The translations under genes and the position numbers were made by a program. This document shows positions 24,518 to 41,350 of a stretch of DNA of 64,000 nt, piece by piece. Every line of letters begins with the position of its first letter. Within the stretch, counting starts at the first letter, position 1. The notes beneath the pieces were generated by a model. That model had not been told where the DNA came from, ran no database searches, and saw only the letters and a list, made by a program, of their open reading frames with translations. The stretch is from contig NC_133617.1 of the NCBI RefSeq assembly GCF_048593235.1, positions 73,430,937-73,494,936 on the forward strand. The letters are read 5' to 3'. This DNA comes from Sminthopsis crassicaudata (lineage: Eukaryota).

Positions 24518-35924
<11,407 letters not shown>

Positions 35925-36365
35925 ATTTGGGACCTATTGATGAGAGGAAAGAGGTCATTAGTGTAATTTGTCATGTTTGCCAATATTCTTATTTTTACAA
36001 CTTGACACACAGCTAATTACCTCAGAAAACCTGGAACCAATAGAAGATTGTGATTACAGTGACACCTCTCTACCTCTCAACCTGACGCATTGGAGTTATC
36101 TTTTTACTTAGATCCATTGGATTTAAAATGATTTGAAAACTTGTTTCCTCTTCCTAACCAAATTCATTTTTTAAATAGCAATTTTATGGTAAGAATTTGA
36201 AGTGTCTCTTATAGGACTTGTCACAAATTTTTCAATTAAAAATGACTTATTTTAATTTCCATGTCCTTTTTTACTATGAGATTTTTGTTTTAGGTGATAG
36301 TTACTAACAATTTAAATCTGTATTGTACTTGTACACGTTCTGTGTATTGTAATTTTGTATAGGGA

Positions 36366-36615
36366 AATAAATTTTTCTGTTAATTCAGATTCATACTGTG
36401 AATTCTGAGCTAATTGACCTGAAACAAACATAACTTTACCAAAACTTTTATTGGGATTTACTCTTAAGTAGAAAGTTACATCTTGTATTGTTTCATGTAG
36501 TTCTAATTTCATGTCTTTGTAAATTCAACCTTCCCTGTGAATAGGTTTGTGCATTTCTGGAAATATTGATACAAAATCTACCATTTTCAGTTGAAAGTTT
36601 ATCAAAGAGAATAAA
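36366..36615 (+). terminator. Candidate PBX4 poly(A) signals (AATAAA at 36366 and 36610)
   Basis: Two AATAAA hexamers at the end of an AT-rich, TGTA-rich 3'UTR-like stretch. Confidence 0.5.
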
Positions 36616-37189
36616 GTTCCAAAGCTTTTTTCCTTTCTGCCTTTGCTGAGTCTTCTCTTATGATTGATGGGTGTCTCTGGCCCCCTCACTTAGCCTTGGC
36701 TTTCCCACTTTCTCTTACAAGGACAGAAGTGGGCCAGCTAATTGACAGTAATTCTCTTTGGCATATTACTAACAATGGTCAAATTGAATGTCAGTGCCTA
36801 TCTGAATTGCTCTGAACCTGAGTAAGATAGTGTAGACTCACGGCATAACTGGAGAGGGGAAGAGATGCAGCGCTGTTGTCAGGATGGCTAGTGTGAGTCT
36901 ACAGCTAATTGGAGTAGGGTTGAGAACCTGAGCTGCCCCTTTCTCTTTCCCTTTCCCCATACTTGGGGCTTGTACAAAGAAGCCTAGAAAAAAACATTTA
37001 TCATTTCAAATCAAGAAAATGTGCAAGGTGATAGAAACTCAGATAAAAATGAAGCAGTCCAAGCCTTCCAGGAATTTATAATCTATGCACCTATACTGTT
37101 TTTTTGGGGGGGACACAGTATATATAGGAGGGTTCAGCAGCATGCCAGAGATGTAGAGATTGTAGGAAGAGAACAAATGGTAAAGGTCT

Positions 37190-39960
37190 GATAATTTCTG
37201 TTTTATTTAGTCAATGAGCATTTATTAAACATAATGTGTCAAACAATGTGTTAAGTGCTAGGACTACAAAAAAAAAGTTCCTTCCCCCAAGGAGTTCGTG
37301 CTTTACAGAAAGAAACAACATAAAAATAACAGTGCATATAAGATATAGTGTAAATGGAAGATAATCCCAAAGGGAAAGCACTAGCAATGGGGAGGACTGG
37401 GAAAGGCTTTTGATACAGGCTGGATCTGTAAGGAATCCAGTAGGCAGAGGGGAGAAGAGAGAGCACTCCAGATATGGAGGACAGTCAGTAAAAAGGCACT
37501 GAGTTGGAAGAATAGAACAGTGAGAAGGCTAGGGTCCCTGGATCACAGAATTTGTAGAGGAAAAAGTTGTGAAGAGCTTCAAAAATCATGGGATTTTATA
37601 TTTGATCTTGGGGATATTAGGAAGCCATGGGGGTTTTCTAAATAGGGGGTCATGTGGTCATACTTGTACTTTAAGAGCATCATTTTGACAGCTGAGAGGA
37701 AAGACTTTTTAGAAAGACAAAGCAGACACCAGCCAGAAAGCCATTGAAATGATGAAGGTATGAGGTTATGAATCTACCAGATGAAGATGAGAAAAGTTGT
37801 ATTTGAGAGATGTTGAAATAGAGATGGCATGATTAGGTAATTAATTAGAAACACAGATTGACTGGATGACATCTGGATGTTGAGCCTGCCTGGGAGGATG
37901 GTGGTGCTCTGAACAATAATAGGGAAATTTTAAAGTTTGGGGAAATTTCAGACAGATTCAATTGGAGATGTCTAGATGGATTCCTAGCAGGTAAATGAGA
38001 GGCAGTTGGTGACATGGGGGCAGATGGCAGGAAAGAGGTTAGGACCAGATATCTAGGTCTTGAATCATAGCATCCTGAGATATTTGAACCCACATGAGCT
38101 AATGAGATCACCAAGGAACTATTACAGATGAAGAGGAAAGAGCCCAGGACAGAGCTTTAAACACCTACAGTTTGCAGGTATGATGTGGATGAAGAGCCAA
38201 CCAAAAATGAGACCAAGGAGGAGAAATCAGAAAGATTACTTACTATAACTACATCTCATTGTGAGGAGTGGGAGAGTGAATACATTAGATGTAAAAGAAA
38301 AGCCCAATTAAGATCAGTGTATATAGCAGATTTACAGTAGACCCAGTTGACATTTTTGAGACTTTAAGCTATGTTCATCAGGAATAGGAGCGAAAGAGTC
38401 AGATGGGTCAGGTAATCCAATGCTGGAGTTTGGCAAGGCATGATCAACAACAGAACAAGATGGCATGTGGTTCAGTGATTCACCAAGGTTCAGGACAGTG
38501 TAGCTGGTGAATGTGGTGTTGCCTGGACGTAAAAGTTGGAGATCATGGTGTGGAAGAACAGATTGGAAGCACAAGGCACAGGGAAAGGAGGAGTGATAGA
38601 AGGGCATGACGAGATGAAATAATTTCAGAGTGACTAAATATGAACTTGGAACCCATAGTTAATGATGGGTTCAAGGGCATGATCATCTTGGTCAAAGGGT
38701 GGTTTATGGGAGTAGGTCAAGTAATTTGACTAGATTGAGGAACTGAGAATTTAAAAGTATTTGAGGGAGTGTATGTTAAAGCTAATATGAAAGCAGGAAT
38801 TAGGGAGAAGAGAAAGATGATGAGCTGGCATTGAACTCATTGGAAAAGATTTTATCTTTAGAATTCTTTAGAATTTATCCTGATGGTTGATGATATGACT
38901 CCCAGAGTAAGGAGTAGATGACAAATTTGAATGGTGCAAAACAGAGGAGAGGTTGCTGAGTGATGGTGGTAGGAGAGTGTAAAGGCAAGAGGAATAAATA
39001 TCCTGATTCTCTACCCTCAAGGAGTTTACTATCTAATGGGAGAGATATACACAAATATATACAAAGCAAAGTATATACAAAAATAATTATAGGAAATTAG
39101 CAGAGGGAAAACACTAGAATCAAGAGGGAAAAACAAGAAGCTAGGGGATGTCTTAGTGCATAGAGCACCAGGTGTGAAATTAGAAAGATTTCATCTTCCA
39201 GCTTCAGACATTTCCTAATCATCAGTTTCTCCTCTGTAAAAATCAGCTAGAGGAGGATATGGCAAACAGCTAAGAAAATCTCCAATGGACTCACCAAAGA
39301 GTAGGGCAAACTTAAATGACTGAACAACAGGCAAGATAGAAGTAGGAGCCTGGGGGACGGATGGAATTGGCCTCTACAGTAAGAAGGAAGGCAGAAGAGG
39401 GGGAGTTTATGAGGTAAGCTAAGAGTCCACTTTAGGTATACTGAGTTTAAGAAACATACTGGACTTCCAGCTTGAGATTTCCAAAAGGCAGTTGGAGATG
39501 CAAGACTGGAGCACAGCAGGTTTGGGGCAGAATGGGTAGATTTTGGAATCAACAGCACGGAGGTGGTAAGTCCACTGGAGCTCATGAGATCAGCATGTGA
39601 AGACTGGAAGAGAAGAGGGCCCAGGACAGAACCCTGAGATAGTTGGAGGGCATGATCTGGAAAAGGAAAAAGGGCAGAGGAGAACAAGCAGGCCAGTGGG
39701 GTCCCAAAAACCTAGAGAGAGAATCGAGAAGTAGTGATTAACCGTGAGAAAGTCAGCCAAGAGGTCGGGGAGAGTGAGTGGAAAAAAGGTCCTGATTTGG
39801 CAGCGAAGTGATGCTGGGTTGTGGGGGAAGGAGGCATCCAGAAGCGGCGTGGTAAGGGATTTAGGGGAGAGAGGTACGGGTTGCAGCCGGCCCCATCGCT
39901 GATGGCTTAGTCTGGTGGGCACGGGCCCCGGGGCCAGCACCGGAGTCTGGAGGTGGGCTG
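37190..39960 (-). mobile_element. Cluster of L2 relics with a MIR filling the PBX4-MVB12A intergenic gap
   Basis: L2 3' tail (agtcaatgagcatttattaa) and purine-rich L2 body on +; boundaries approximate. Confidence 0.7.
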
Positions 39961-41350
39961 CTTGGCTCAGGTCTGAGGGGGGTTTTCCTGGGAAGTCTCC
40001 CGGGAGAAGGGGCGGAGTGGTTCGGATGGAGATTTAGGAAGGATTCCTAAAAGGATTCTAATGCTTGACTTGCATCCCGAGAGCGTGAGCGGTCACACCC
40101 CGATGTTCCGTGGATTATTGGTGGTAGAACACGGGGCGCTCCGAGTGGTCGGACCCGCCACAGGCAGCCGGGCGGGAACAACTCTTGCCCGGGGATGGAC
40201 ACCCCCTGGGCGAGCCACGTGAGCTCCGGGCTCCCCGAGAAGGCTCGGAGGGGCCCTGCCCTCTTGCACCGCCGGCCGCAGGGAGCGTGCGGACGGGTCG
40301 GTGGGAAGGGGAGGTGCGTTACTAAGAAGGCTGGGGAACGGATCCCAGGGGAGGCGGCTCTGGGGCCCTAACGGCGTCGGAAACGGGGAGCCGAGAGCGG
40401 CCCTCGAGCACAACCTGCAGGCGGGCCCTAGTCGGCAGCTTAGCAGCAGATTGGGCTCCGTCCCTCGGCGCGGGAGCAGCGCAGCTCGGGGCGGGGCGCT
40501 TGGCAGCTGAGGGAGAGTTCTCGGAAGAGCGGGACTGCAGGCAGGGAGCGGCGGGCAAGCGGCAGGGGCAGGCCGGGGGGGGCGAATCCCCGAGAGCGAG
40601 CCCCGCTGGAATACACTCGGAGGTCCCTATCGCAGGAAACTTCCCGTCCCTCGGCTCCGTCTCCTTCCGCGCACAGTGCCGGGCGCCGGCCGGAGCCCCG
40701 GGTTCCCGGAACGGGCGGTGGGCCGTGGGCAGGGAGGTTTGCAAGGACCTCTGGACAATGGAGTTCTTTCCGGACACATCTCTAACACGTCGACGCGTCC
40801 CAGGAGTTGCGCACGCGCAGGACGCTTTACGCCGGAGCTGTGCTTTCTGAGCGAGTTTTCCGGGGAGTAACTTGGGCTGTTTGGTTCGGTAGTTGCCGTA
40901 CCTCGCAGGCAGACGCCAAGGACTTATGGGAATGTTTGCGCAGGCGCGCCCAGTTCGCCGAGTTGATTTCTGGTCGCTGTAGTTCCTCCGGCTACGGACG
41001 GGCCCGAAGTCCGGCGAGCTGTGGGCGGGACCCCTGGCCTCTCGCTTCGGTGGCCCTTGCACCTCTTCATTCCGCCTCCTTTTGCCTCGATCCGCAGCCC
41101 ATACGATGGATCTCGGGCCCGGCCCTGACGGGTCTCCGATAGCCGGCCTGGGCTGGGCTTTGGCTTCGGCTGTGCCGCCCCGGGGTTACAGCGCGGTGAG
41201 TGACGCCCGGCCCGGCCCGGCCTCCGCTCCCTCCGGCCTGCGTTTCCCTCGACCCTGCGGGCCCCGTTCACGTGATCCTCTACCCCCCTACTCTCCTCCG
41301 TGTCCCAATGGCGCCACCCCCCACCCCTCTGACCTCTGCCCCTCCGCTCC
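39950..41350. promoter_or_regulatory. CpG island / MVB12A promoter
   Basis: High GC and CpG; NRF1 motifs TGCGCACGCGCA (40808-40819) and TGCGCAGGCGCG (40937-40948); GAACTACA on minus near 40980. Confidence 0.85.
41106..41195 (+). CDS. MVB12A: MVB12A exon 1
   Basis: [30 protein letters not shown]|gtgagt. Confidence 0.9.

Follow-up and report, generated by a model that had tools for sequence, protein, structure and literature searches.

PBX4 lies directly upstream of MVB12A in the Sminthopsis crassicaudata genome: a mammalian gene adjacency most likely broken in stem placentals

The window, a stretch of 64,000 nucleotides from Sminthopsis crassicaudata (contig NC_133617.1, positions 73,430,937 to 73,494,936), harbors PBX4 (exons 3–9, forward strand), MVB12A (forward), NXNL1 (reverse) and SLC27A1 (forward) in this order, and parts of human 19p13.11 are its orthologous counterpart. 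Coordinates are compiled in Table 1. As the original prediction had it, the PBX4 stop codon and the MVB12A start codon are located about 5 kb apart on one strand, with 5181 bp separating the two coding sequences. No assembly gap is present between the two genes, the sole N run of the window being found at 7856-8007, 28 kb away.

The upstream gene is a PBC-class TALE homeobox (PBX) gene, in which a PBC domain precedes a TALE homeodomain on consecutive forward-strand exons (Pfam Homeobox_KN 1.1e-09, Homeodomain 1.5e-08). Exon 3 (Pfam PBC 2.3e-23), which is followed by a GT donor, is 94% identical to emu DNA over 315 bp with the exon flanks included, and identity to emu at the amino acid level amounts to 97% for exon 4 and 94% for exon 6. 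The last exon shares 94–97% of its amino acids with echidna, opossum and emu. Compared to the emu PBX gene beside MVB12A, the PBX exons of the window are 72–97% identical in amino acid sequence and the 3'UTR is 79% identical. The blastn alignment of this 3'UTR to emu extends over 870 bp, and identities to echidna and opossum are 77% and 86%, respectively, so that it is deeply conserved across amniotes. The name PBX4, as opposed to PBX1-3, is suggested by synteny, by orthology to the gene that neighbors MVB12A in birds and by homeodomain residues which we take to be diagnostic of PBX4. A word search with exon 3 returned nearly exclusively unnamed fragments, the sole named PBX match being a PBX1 fragment with 70% identity. 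The chicken PBX gene linked to MVB12A is called PBX4 in the passages of PMC7530604 that deal with it.

The downstream gene is the orthologue of MVB12A, a subunit of ESCRT-I. The Pfam MVB12 family (PF10240) is found on four of its exons. In tblastn searches, for which proteins named MVB12A from marsupials and echidna served as queries, the exons show 95–100% identity to Sarcophilus harrisii MVB12A and about 90% to the Monodelphis protein; the closest named relatives are thus MVB12A rather than MVB12B proteins, those of the Tasmanian devil being nearest, as would suit a dasyuromorph. The structure of the MVB12B MABP domain (3tow) matches MVB12A exon 4 weakly (22.9 bits). The NXNL1-like gene shows 79–91% amino acid identity to a Thioredoxin_8 gene of the opossum and 51% to that of the sloth. 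The names NXNL1 for the Thioredoxin_8 gene and SLC27A1 for the AMP-binding gene are putative.

Table 1. Features of the PBX4–MVB12A locus in window coordinates.
Feature	Position	Strand	Characteristics
PBX4 exon 3	24517..24759	+	PBC-A/B region; core of conserved coding sequence, ends accurate to a few nt
PBX4 exon 4	25153..25344	+	end of PBC domain; Pfam PBC 4.7e-31; AG acceptor, GT donor
PBX4 exon 5	26254..26394	+	first part of TALE homeodomain; Pfam Homeobox_KN, Homeodomain; splice sites
PBX4 exon 6	27122..27280	+	homeodomain helix 3 (11 residues), read from the sequence
PBX4 exon 7	27821..27925	+	tblastn matches in echidna and emu; splice sites
PBX4 exon 8	34731..34817	+	87 nt; amino acid identity 79% (echidna), 85% (emu); also conserved at DNA level
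PBX4 last coding exon	35832..35924	+	coding to 35921; stop TAA 35922-35924; AG acceptor 35830-35831
PBX4 3'UTR	35925..36650 (end approximate)	+	blastn conservation; polyA signals AATAAA at 36366 and 36610
Intergenic spacer	36651..39910		AT-rich, CpG-depleted; GC 0.41, CpG o/e 0.09
CpG island	39911..41430	+	presumed MVB12A promoter, 5'UTR and exon 1; GC 0.67, o/e 0.81
MVB12A coding region	41106..44982	+	nine exon cores; ATG 41106-41108; stop TAG 44980-44982
MVB12A exon cores 1-5	41106-41195, 42047-42130, 42650-42739, 42986-43114, 43340-43453	+	splice sites
MVB12A exon cores 6-9	43610-43687, 44043-44102, 44727-44783, 44920-44979	+	splice sites
NXNL1-like gene	46526..47874	-	two thioredoxin-like exon segments; tail-to-tail with MVB12A; Pfam Thioredoxin_8 6.8e-18
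SLC27A1-like gene, 5' exons	57100..61916	+	acyl-CoA synthetase/fatty-acid transporter; Pfam AMP-binding 1.4e-21 on 59620-60339

The 5.18-kb interval between the coding regions is composed of the 0.72-kb 3'UTR, a decayed, AT-rich spacer of about 3.2 kb and the 1.2 kb of the CpG island that precede the start codon. The description of this interval as containing only repeats and a CpG island is thus correct with respect to the island, but not with respect to "only", as the first ~0.72 kb belong to PBX4. Repeats are indicated weakly by two short blocks (37567-37696 and ~39010-39128) which have further matches, either at other places of the window or at the opossum locus. According to blastn, collinearity with the opossum extends to 37015 and resumes at 37237-37849, and a further opossum-conserved block (40807-41203) is located within the CpG island, which is 1.5 kb (1519 bp) long and includes MVB12A exon 1. 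In the rest of the spacer neither a Pfam domain (in the ORFs tested) nor an Rfam family nor a sizeable tandem array was detected, and no relic of MIS13 or TMEM221 was found in the spacer.

Gene order around MVB12A differs between vertebrate groups. In the echidna, MVB12A is preceded on its own strand, at a distance of 2788 bp, by the end of a gene coding for 368 amino acids with PBC and homeodomain, and a 646-aa AMP-binding gene follows MVB12A in the position of the SLC27A1-like gene of the window. In the opossum, a PBX gene ends 9286 bp upstream of MVB12A and NXNL1 is found on the reverse strand. The emu locus reads PBX(+), MIS13(+), MVB12A(+), ATP13A1(-), with PBX 6.2 kb upstream of MVB12A. 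Turtle and anole likewise show MIS13(+), MVB12A(+), ATP13A1(-), the MIS13/DSN1-like gene being situated directly upstream of MVB12A; in the caecilian a MIS13-like gene is also found upstream, but in opposite orientation to MVB12A, and the shark has MVB12A(+), ATP13A1(-). In shark, anole, turtle and emu, ATP13A1 is placed tail-to-tail downstream of MVB12A, in place of NXNL1/SLC27A1. In sengi, sloth and orca, which represent three placental superorders, neither a PBX4 exon nor the PBX4 3'UTR is present within 10 kb upstream of MVB12A, the distance covered by the placental check. These placentals alone carry TMEM221 (Pfam Jiraiya) between MVB12A and NXNL1; the gene was sought in the window and in the opossum and echidna loci and is absent from them.

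Linkage of the two genes in outgroup vertebrates, as expected of a genomic regulatory block (GRB) pair, is observed at 6.2 kb on the same strand in the emu and as direct adjacency in echidna and opossum. The ancient linkage and its loss in human have already been published: in the passages of Touceda-Suarez et al. 2020 (PMC7530604) concerned with this same pair, PBX4 and MVB12A are linked in gar, elephant shark and chicken and unlinked in human. These passages treat shark, gar, chicken and human only and contain no timing of the break, no inversion and no mention of the emu MIS13-like gene. The present analysis narrows the timing, since the pair is found in a monotreme and two marsupials, while placentals of three superorders show no PBX4 sequence in the 10 kb that precede MVB12A. 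A paralogous pair, PBX3 and MVB12B (FAM125B), exists on human 9q33, where both belong to one ultraconserved-element cluster shared with GAPVD1 and MAPKAP1 (PMC3436827); in zebrafish, pbx3b is flanked by mvb12bb (PMC6614851). PBX4–MVB12A is probably a remnant of a far older Pbx–Mvb12 linkage that also survives as PBX3–MVB12B.

The two pairs differ in their non-coding content. The PBX3–MVB12B block is extensive and contains many conserved non-coding elements, whereas conservation around PBX4–MVB12A is confined to exons, the 3'UTR and one block in intron 2. When window positions 20001-48500 were compared by blastn to the loci of echidna, emu, turtle, anole, shark and caecilian, with sensitivity limited to roughly 65% identity across some 60 bp or more, the matches recovered were exons, the 3'UTR of PBX4 and, as the one exception, a short unassigned block in PBX4 intron 2 (21395-21492, echidna). 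Conserved non-coding blocks were found by this search neither in the spacer nor in the MVB12A introns, and thus the elements in or beyond the bystander gene that would hold a GRB pair together were not seen.

The proposal that PBX4–MVB12A represents the ancestral vertebrate order holds for the linkage, as judged from the outgroups and the cited passages of PMC7530604, but not for direct adjacency, because a MIS13-like gene intervenes in the emu. Direct adjacency is the mammalian state and not vertebrate-ancestral microstructure; on the same strand, it had been established by the time of the mammalian ancestor. With a MIS13/DSN1-like gene on the 5' side and ATP13A1 on the 3' side of MVB12A in non-mammals, an earlier rearrangement in stem mammals is also needed, in which the MIS13/DSN1-like gene would have been lost or moved and ATP13A1 exchanged for SLC27A1 downstream of MVB12A.

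As the adjacency is present in the independent opossum and echidna assemblies and absent from sengi, sloth and orca, its break is most likely a stem-placental event and not a marsupial novelty or a misjoin. The predicted disruption of the order in placentals is borne out: the genes are joined in window, opossum and echidna, PBX4 is missing within 10 kb in the three placentals, and the pair is unlinked in human according to the passages of PMC7530604. The break would be situated between the conserved 3'UTR and the MVB12A promoter, within about 36650-40800, so that neither gene would have been damaged; the spacer together with 39911-~40800 is the candidate interval. In its simplest form the event would be an inversion of about 2 Mb with its other end between BST2 and CILP2, of which the end at PBX4–MVB12A is the half addressed by these data, and as a result the tetherin promoter would end up head-to-head with the MVB12A side. 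This geometry assumes particular human strand orientations; the human order on the PBX4 side is PBX4-LPAR2-GMIP.

The evolution of the tetherin (BST2) locus constitutes the other half of the proposed inversion, and BST2, CILP2 and PLVAP all lie outside the window. In human, as in bats, tetherin is located between MVB12A and PLVAP (PMC9599465), in line with the claimed neighborhood of MVB12A and BST2. For the claim that non-eutherian BST2 lies beside CILP2, the literature agrees as far as non-mammals are concerned: according to the part of PMC10617486 dealing with the locus, which cites Heusinger 2015 and Blanco-Melo 2016, the tetherin of reptiles, birds and fish is flanked by CILP2 and PLVAP. 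Taken together, a mammal-ancestral adjacency, a break in stem placentals, an inversion of about 2 Mb and a prior change in stem mammals make up the explanation that we consider probable overall.

A single inversion from MVB12A to CILP2, as originally put forward, does not give the full account. TMEM221 follows MVB12A in the three placentals and is absent from window, opossum and echidna, so gene content beside the breakpoints differs as well and at least one further event is required; together with the stem-mammal change, this makes "one inversion" probably incomplete. The placental order could instead have arisen entirely in several steps, by nested or successive inversions or small transpositions in a fragile MVB12A neighborhood, a course that we regard as rather unlikely. 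Besides TMEM221, it is favored by the stem-mammal rearrangement, in which the MIS13-like gene had already gone and ATP13A1 had been replaced, indicating repeated breakage at the site. However, one inversion would be expected to yield the two reciprocal junctions BST2/MVB12A and CILP2/PBX4 that are present in human, and TMEM221 could have been lost here in marsupials and monotremes. If several steps were involved, the BST2–MVB12A neighborhood would have resulted from two or more events.

That PBX4–MVB12A is marsupial-derived and BST2–MVB12A the ancestral mammalian order is very improbable. Nothing was found in its favor, and the outgroups contradict it: the echidna, a monotreme, shares the order PBX > MVB12A > SLC27A1, PBX4 lies upstream of MVB12A in the emu, the passages of PMC7530604 report the linkage in chicken, gar and elephant shark, and those of PMC10617486 place non-mammalian tetherin beside CILP2, not MVB12A. 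An assembly misjoin in the Sminthopsis genome is hardly credible, as nothing speaks for it, the sequence runs without interruption between PBX4 exon 9 and MVB12A exon 1, the blocks 35732-37015, 37237-37849 and 40807-41203 are collinear with the independent opossum assembly, and the echidna has the same junction.

With the stem-placental break as the preferred reading, the loss of an ancient linkage between a developmental gene and its bystander is dated to the placental stem, and the breakpoint is narrowed to a spacer of about 4 kb which leaves both the deeply conserved 3'UTR of PBX4 and the promoter of MVB12A intact. Although well founded, the finding is a modest one, given the prior publication of the linkage and of its loss in human; annotated marsupial and monotreme assemblies already show the PBX4–MVB12A order, and its value lies in confirmation and refinement rather than discovery. 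Should the reciprocal breakpoint be confirmed, the context of tetherin, with BST2/BISPR by MVB12A, would be new to placentals, which is a minor yet tangible point for researchers of tetherin regulation.

A wider reading, offered tentatively, is that the flanks of MVB12A are a reused breakpoint, broken at least three times, and that the BST2/BISPR unit upstream of MVB12A is a placental invention made possible by a decayed Pbx–Mvb12 constraint. In stem mammals the 3' neighbor would have changed from ATP13A1 to NXNL1/SLC27A1 and the MIS13/DSN1-like gene would have disappeared from the 5' side; later, in stem placentals, BST2 would have replaced PBX4 as the 5' neighbor and TMEM221 would have appeared on the 3' side. 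Reused evolutionary breakpoint regions of mammals are likewise intergenic, spare both flanking genes and have neighborhoods rearranged more than once, although the scale here is small, with some 2 Mb inside a single chromosome arm, and reuse is deduced by comparing the gene orders of ten species rather than from whole-genome alignments. The last of these events would bring the interferon-inducible tetherin promoter, bidirectional for BST2/BISPR, beside the MVB12A side.

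PBX4 and MVB12A lie on one strand, and the 5181 bp between the PBX4 stop and the MVB12A start codon are gap-free, in agreement with the original observation of a same-strand adjacency of about 5 kb. The sequence directly after the stop aligns to post-PBX-stop sequence of emu (79%, 870-bp alignment), echidna (77%) and opossum (86%), and on the strength of this alignment and of two AATAAA polyadenylation signals it is assigned to the PBX4 3′UTR, which is deeply conserved across amniotes and not junk. Such conservation is high for a 3′UTR and suggests dense post-transcriptional regulation. 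The expectation that only repeats and a CpG island separate the genes thus holds for the island but not for the word "only"; repeats are plausible in the AT-rich spacer, where matches to interspersed repeats are weak only. Long ORFs of the spacer and the CpG island contained no Pfam families, Rfam and Tandem Repeats Finder gave nothing of note in the interval, and comparison of the interval with the window yielded no match at E≤1e-5 and four or five short, weak matches under relaxed settings.

Coordinates of features in the window and in the contig segments around MVB12A of the compared species (positions outside the window are those of the respective segment)
Locus	Feature	Position	Strand	Remark
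Window	N run, the only one	7856-8007
Window	PBX4 intron 2 conserved block	21395-21492		matched in echidna
Window	LINE-like fragments	22122-22769, 24029-24148, 32118-32391, 50036-50251		PBX4 introns; also downstream of NXNL1
Window	PBC domain (Pfam)	24478-24792, 25024-25344	+	stop-free segments
Window	Homeodomain (Pfam)	26242-26502	+	with PBX-type exons
Window	Later PBX4 exons	27122-27280, 27821-27925, ~34731-34817 (exon 8, 34731-34817), 35832-35921	+	terminal TAA 35922-35924
Window	PBX4 3′UTR	35925-~36650		AATAAA at 36366 and 36610
Window	Spacer proper	~36650-39900		GC 0.41, CpG o/e 0.09
Window	CpG island	39911-41430		GC 0.67, CpG o/e 0.81
Window	Opossum-conserved block	40807-41203
Window	MVB12A	ATG 41106 to TAG 44980-44982	+	nine exons; Pfam PF10240 on four
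Window	NXNL1-like gene, thioredoxin-like	46526-47874	−	two exons; tail-to-tail with MVB12A
Window	SLC27A1-like gene	start near 57100	+	AMP-binding
Echidna	Stretch of 1.9 kb from MVB12A to the AMP-binding gene	15841-17702
Opossum	NXNL1 model	359-17635	−	284 aa
Emu	MIS13/DSN1-like gene	4868-9727	+
Turtle	MIS13/DSN1-like gene	1-9415	+
Anole	MIS13/DSN1-like gene	1-3390	+
Caecilian	MIS13/DSN1-like gene	1-4096		opposite strand to MVB12A
Shark	ATP13A1	34928-38281	−
Anole	ATP13A1	29682-38498	−
Turtle	ATP13A1	16272-24844	−
Emu	ATP13A1	12741-22004	−
Sengi	TMEM221	23185-24247
Sloth	TMEM221	15960-19244
Orca	TMEM221	22908-23247
Orca	Intronless ORF	4766-5557	−	263 aa
Orca	Repeat	17106-17745

The window is AT-rich (33–38% GC), with CpG strongly depleted except in two islands. 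Exons were searched singly, one by one, without a spliced protein model. PBX4 exons 1-2 were not found within the 64-kb window, and long ORFs of its GC-rich 54–58 kb region contained no Pfam families. The thioredoxin-like gene is presumably NXNL1 and the AMP-binding gene is taken to be SLC27A1. For MVB12A, one exon was compared with a representative protein library, and a word search with the full-length match obtained there returned named MVB12A proteins from many vertebrates. The MVB12A exons are 95–100% identical to the Sarcophilus harrisii protein and about 90% identical to those of Monodelphis, wombat and wallaby, which marks the genome as that of a marsupial, probably a further dasyuromorph. 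The MABP domain of MVB12B (solved structure) matches exon 4 weakly only. A word search with PBX exon 3 retrieved almost exclusively unnamed short-read ORF fragments, and the paralogue name is therefore derived from synteny, not from a tree: the gene is called PBX4 because it is the orthologue of the emu PBX gene beside MVB12A, and the chicken gene linked to MVB12A is so named in PMC7530604. The small exon 8 is retained with 79% aa identity in echidna and 85% in emu, and is therefore ancestral for amniotes. Exon 3 with its adjacent intron flanks (24484-24797) shares 94% DNA identity with emu over 315 bp, the conservation extending beyond the donor site.

Contig segments around MVB12A with 10-kb flanks were compared for ten species, human not among them. 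A same-strand PBX gene ends 2788 bp upstream of MVB12A in echidna, where a 646-aa AMP-binding gene follows 1.9 kb after MVB12A, and 9286 bp upstream in opossum, which has an opposite-strand thioredoxin-like gene; in emu the order is PBX(+), MIS13-like(+), MVB12A(+), ATP13A1(−). An assembly misjoin is dismissed, as collinearity with the opossum locus extends through the spacer of the window and the same junction is present in echidna. Nor did the arrangement originate in marsupials, the linkage being retained in a monotreme (echidna) and a bird (emu). The predicted antiquity of the linkage is borne out by the same two species and by Touceda-Suarez et al. (PMC7530604), who describe linkage of PBX4 and MVB12A for gar, elephant shark and chicken but not for human. 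The main idea has thus been published before, and public annotations already show how these genes are ordered in marsupials and monotremes. Overall, the observation is confirmed, its interpretation is partly supported and its novelty is low; the additions to the published linkage are the inferred placental-stem timing, a breakpoint interval of about 4 kb, the conserved 3′UTR and the derived nature of the mammalian order itself.

Within 10 kb upstream of MVB12A no gene is called in sengi (Afrotheria) or sloth (Xenarthra), and orca (Laurasiatheria) has no PBX gene there, just an intronless ORF. All three carry TMEM221 (Pfam Jiraiya) between MVB12A and NXNL1, with a thioredoxin-like gene next to it in sloth. 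The PBX exons and 3′UTR of the window found no match upstream of MVB12A in these species (tblastn, blastn), which have about 200 bp of promoter sequence in common in that region and no more. The break most likely occurred once marsupials had diverged but earlier than the placental radiation; evidence for the latter bound is indirect and consists of the lack of PBX4 within 10 kb in members of three superorders, the common TMEM221 context and the published human state. The position of the break must be between the end of the conserved 3′UTR (~36650) and the MVB12A promoter block (~40800).

Published work regards Pbx-Mvb12 as a regulatory block of ancient origin, and mvb12bb flanks zebrafish pbx3b (PMC6614851). 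In contrast to PBX3 and FAM125B (MVB12B), which have a cluster of ultraconserved elements in common (PMC3436827), the PBX4-MVB12A copy keeps just exons and the PBX4 3′UTR in blastn comparison with echidna or emu, plus a single short block within intron 2 of PBX4 in echidna, no conserved sequence being found at this sensitivity in the spacer or the MVB12A introns. This pattern fits a linkage that may be held by inertia rather than constraint, and a linkage of this kind could be cut in the spacer without cost.

Direct PBX4-MVB12A adjacency is a mammalian state and is itself derived. A MIS13/DSN1-like kinetochore gene, situated between PBX and MVB12A in emu, directly precedes MVB12A in diamondback terrapin and anole, both with the order MIS13-like(+), MVB12A(+), ATP13A1(−), and on the opposite strand in caecilian; no relic of it was detected at the protein level in the window, opossum or echidna (E≤1e-3). 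ATP13A1 (P5A-ATPase, ~1180–1190 aa) is arranged tail-to-tail downstream of MVB12A in anole, turtle, emu and sevengill shark, the last with no gene called within 10 kb upstream, and its position in the monotreme and the marsupials is taken by SLC27A1, with or without NXNL1. From the positions of these two genes in non-mammals and mammals it follows that a stem-mammal rearrangement is also needed. In mammals, going by the human map, ATP13A1 lies on the other side of PBX4, separated from it by LPAR2 and GMIP, and on its strand; in stem mammals a GMIP-LPAR2-PBX4-MVB12A block could have been inverted and the MIS13-like gene removed. A search at E≤1e-3 detected no TMEM221-like sequence anywhere in the 64-kb window or in the loci of opossum and echidna, and the window offers just 1.5 kb between MVB12A and NXNL1 (44983-46525).

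The proposal that one inversion, from MVB12A to CILP2, brought tetherin (BST2) beside MVB12A remains the simplest model; the two junctions in human are the reciprocal products that it would yield. Since TMEM221 occurs in placentals only among the compared mammals, one inversion is not a full explanation, and a stem-mammal rearrangement is required besides; the odds of a single clean inversion are roughly even to good and not more. Tetherin is situated between CILP2 and PLVAP in non-mammals (PMC10617486) and between MVB12A and PLVAP in bat and human (PMC9599465), and human BISPR, which has its promoter in common with BST2, lies between BST2 and MVB12A (PMC4311693). The BST2/BISPR/MVB12A unit would be a placental novelty only if the inversion model were confirmed. 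In sengi, sloth and orca the 10 kb upstream of MVB12A contain no candidate BST2 ORF, which says little on the position of BST2; in human, the distance from BST2 to the main MVB12A start exceeds 10 kb and BISPR lies in between.

NXNL1-like sequence was not found in the echidna locus, the gene having been either lost or relocated in monotremes. On the strand opposite to MVB12A, the annotated opossum NXNL1 model runs through the whole of that gene and into the region of the PBX4 3′UTR, which could reflect read-through or an artefact of annotation. The LINE-like fragments of the window show 60–67% DNA identity to a repeat of the orca locus. The orca ORF, 4.4 kb upstream of MVB12A, faintly matches sugar-phosphate/nucleotide-sugar transporters (TPT) and is likely a retrocopy.
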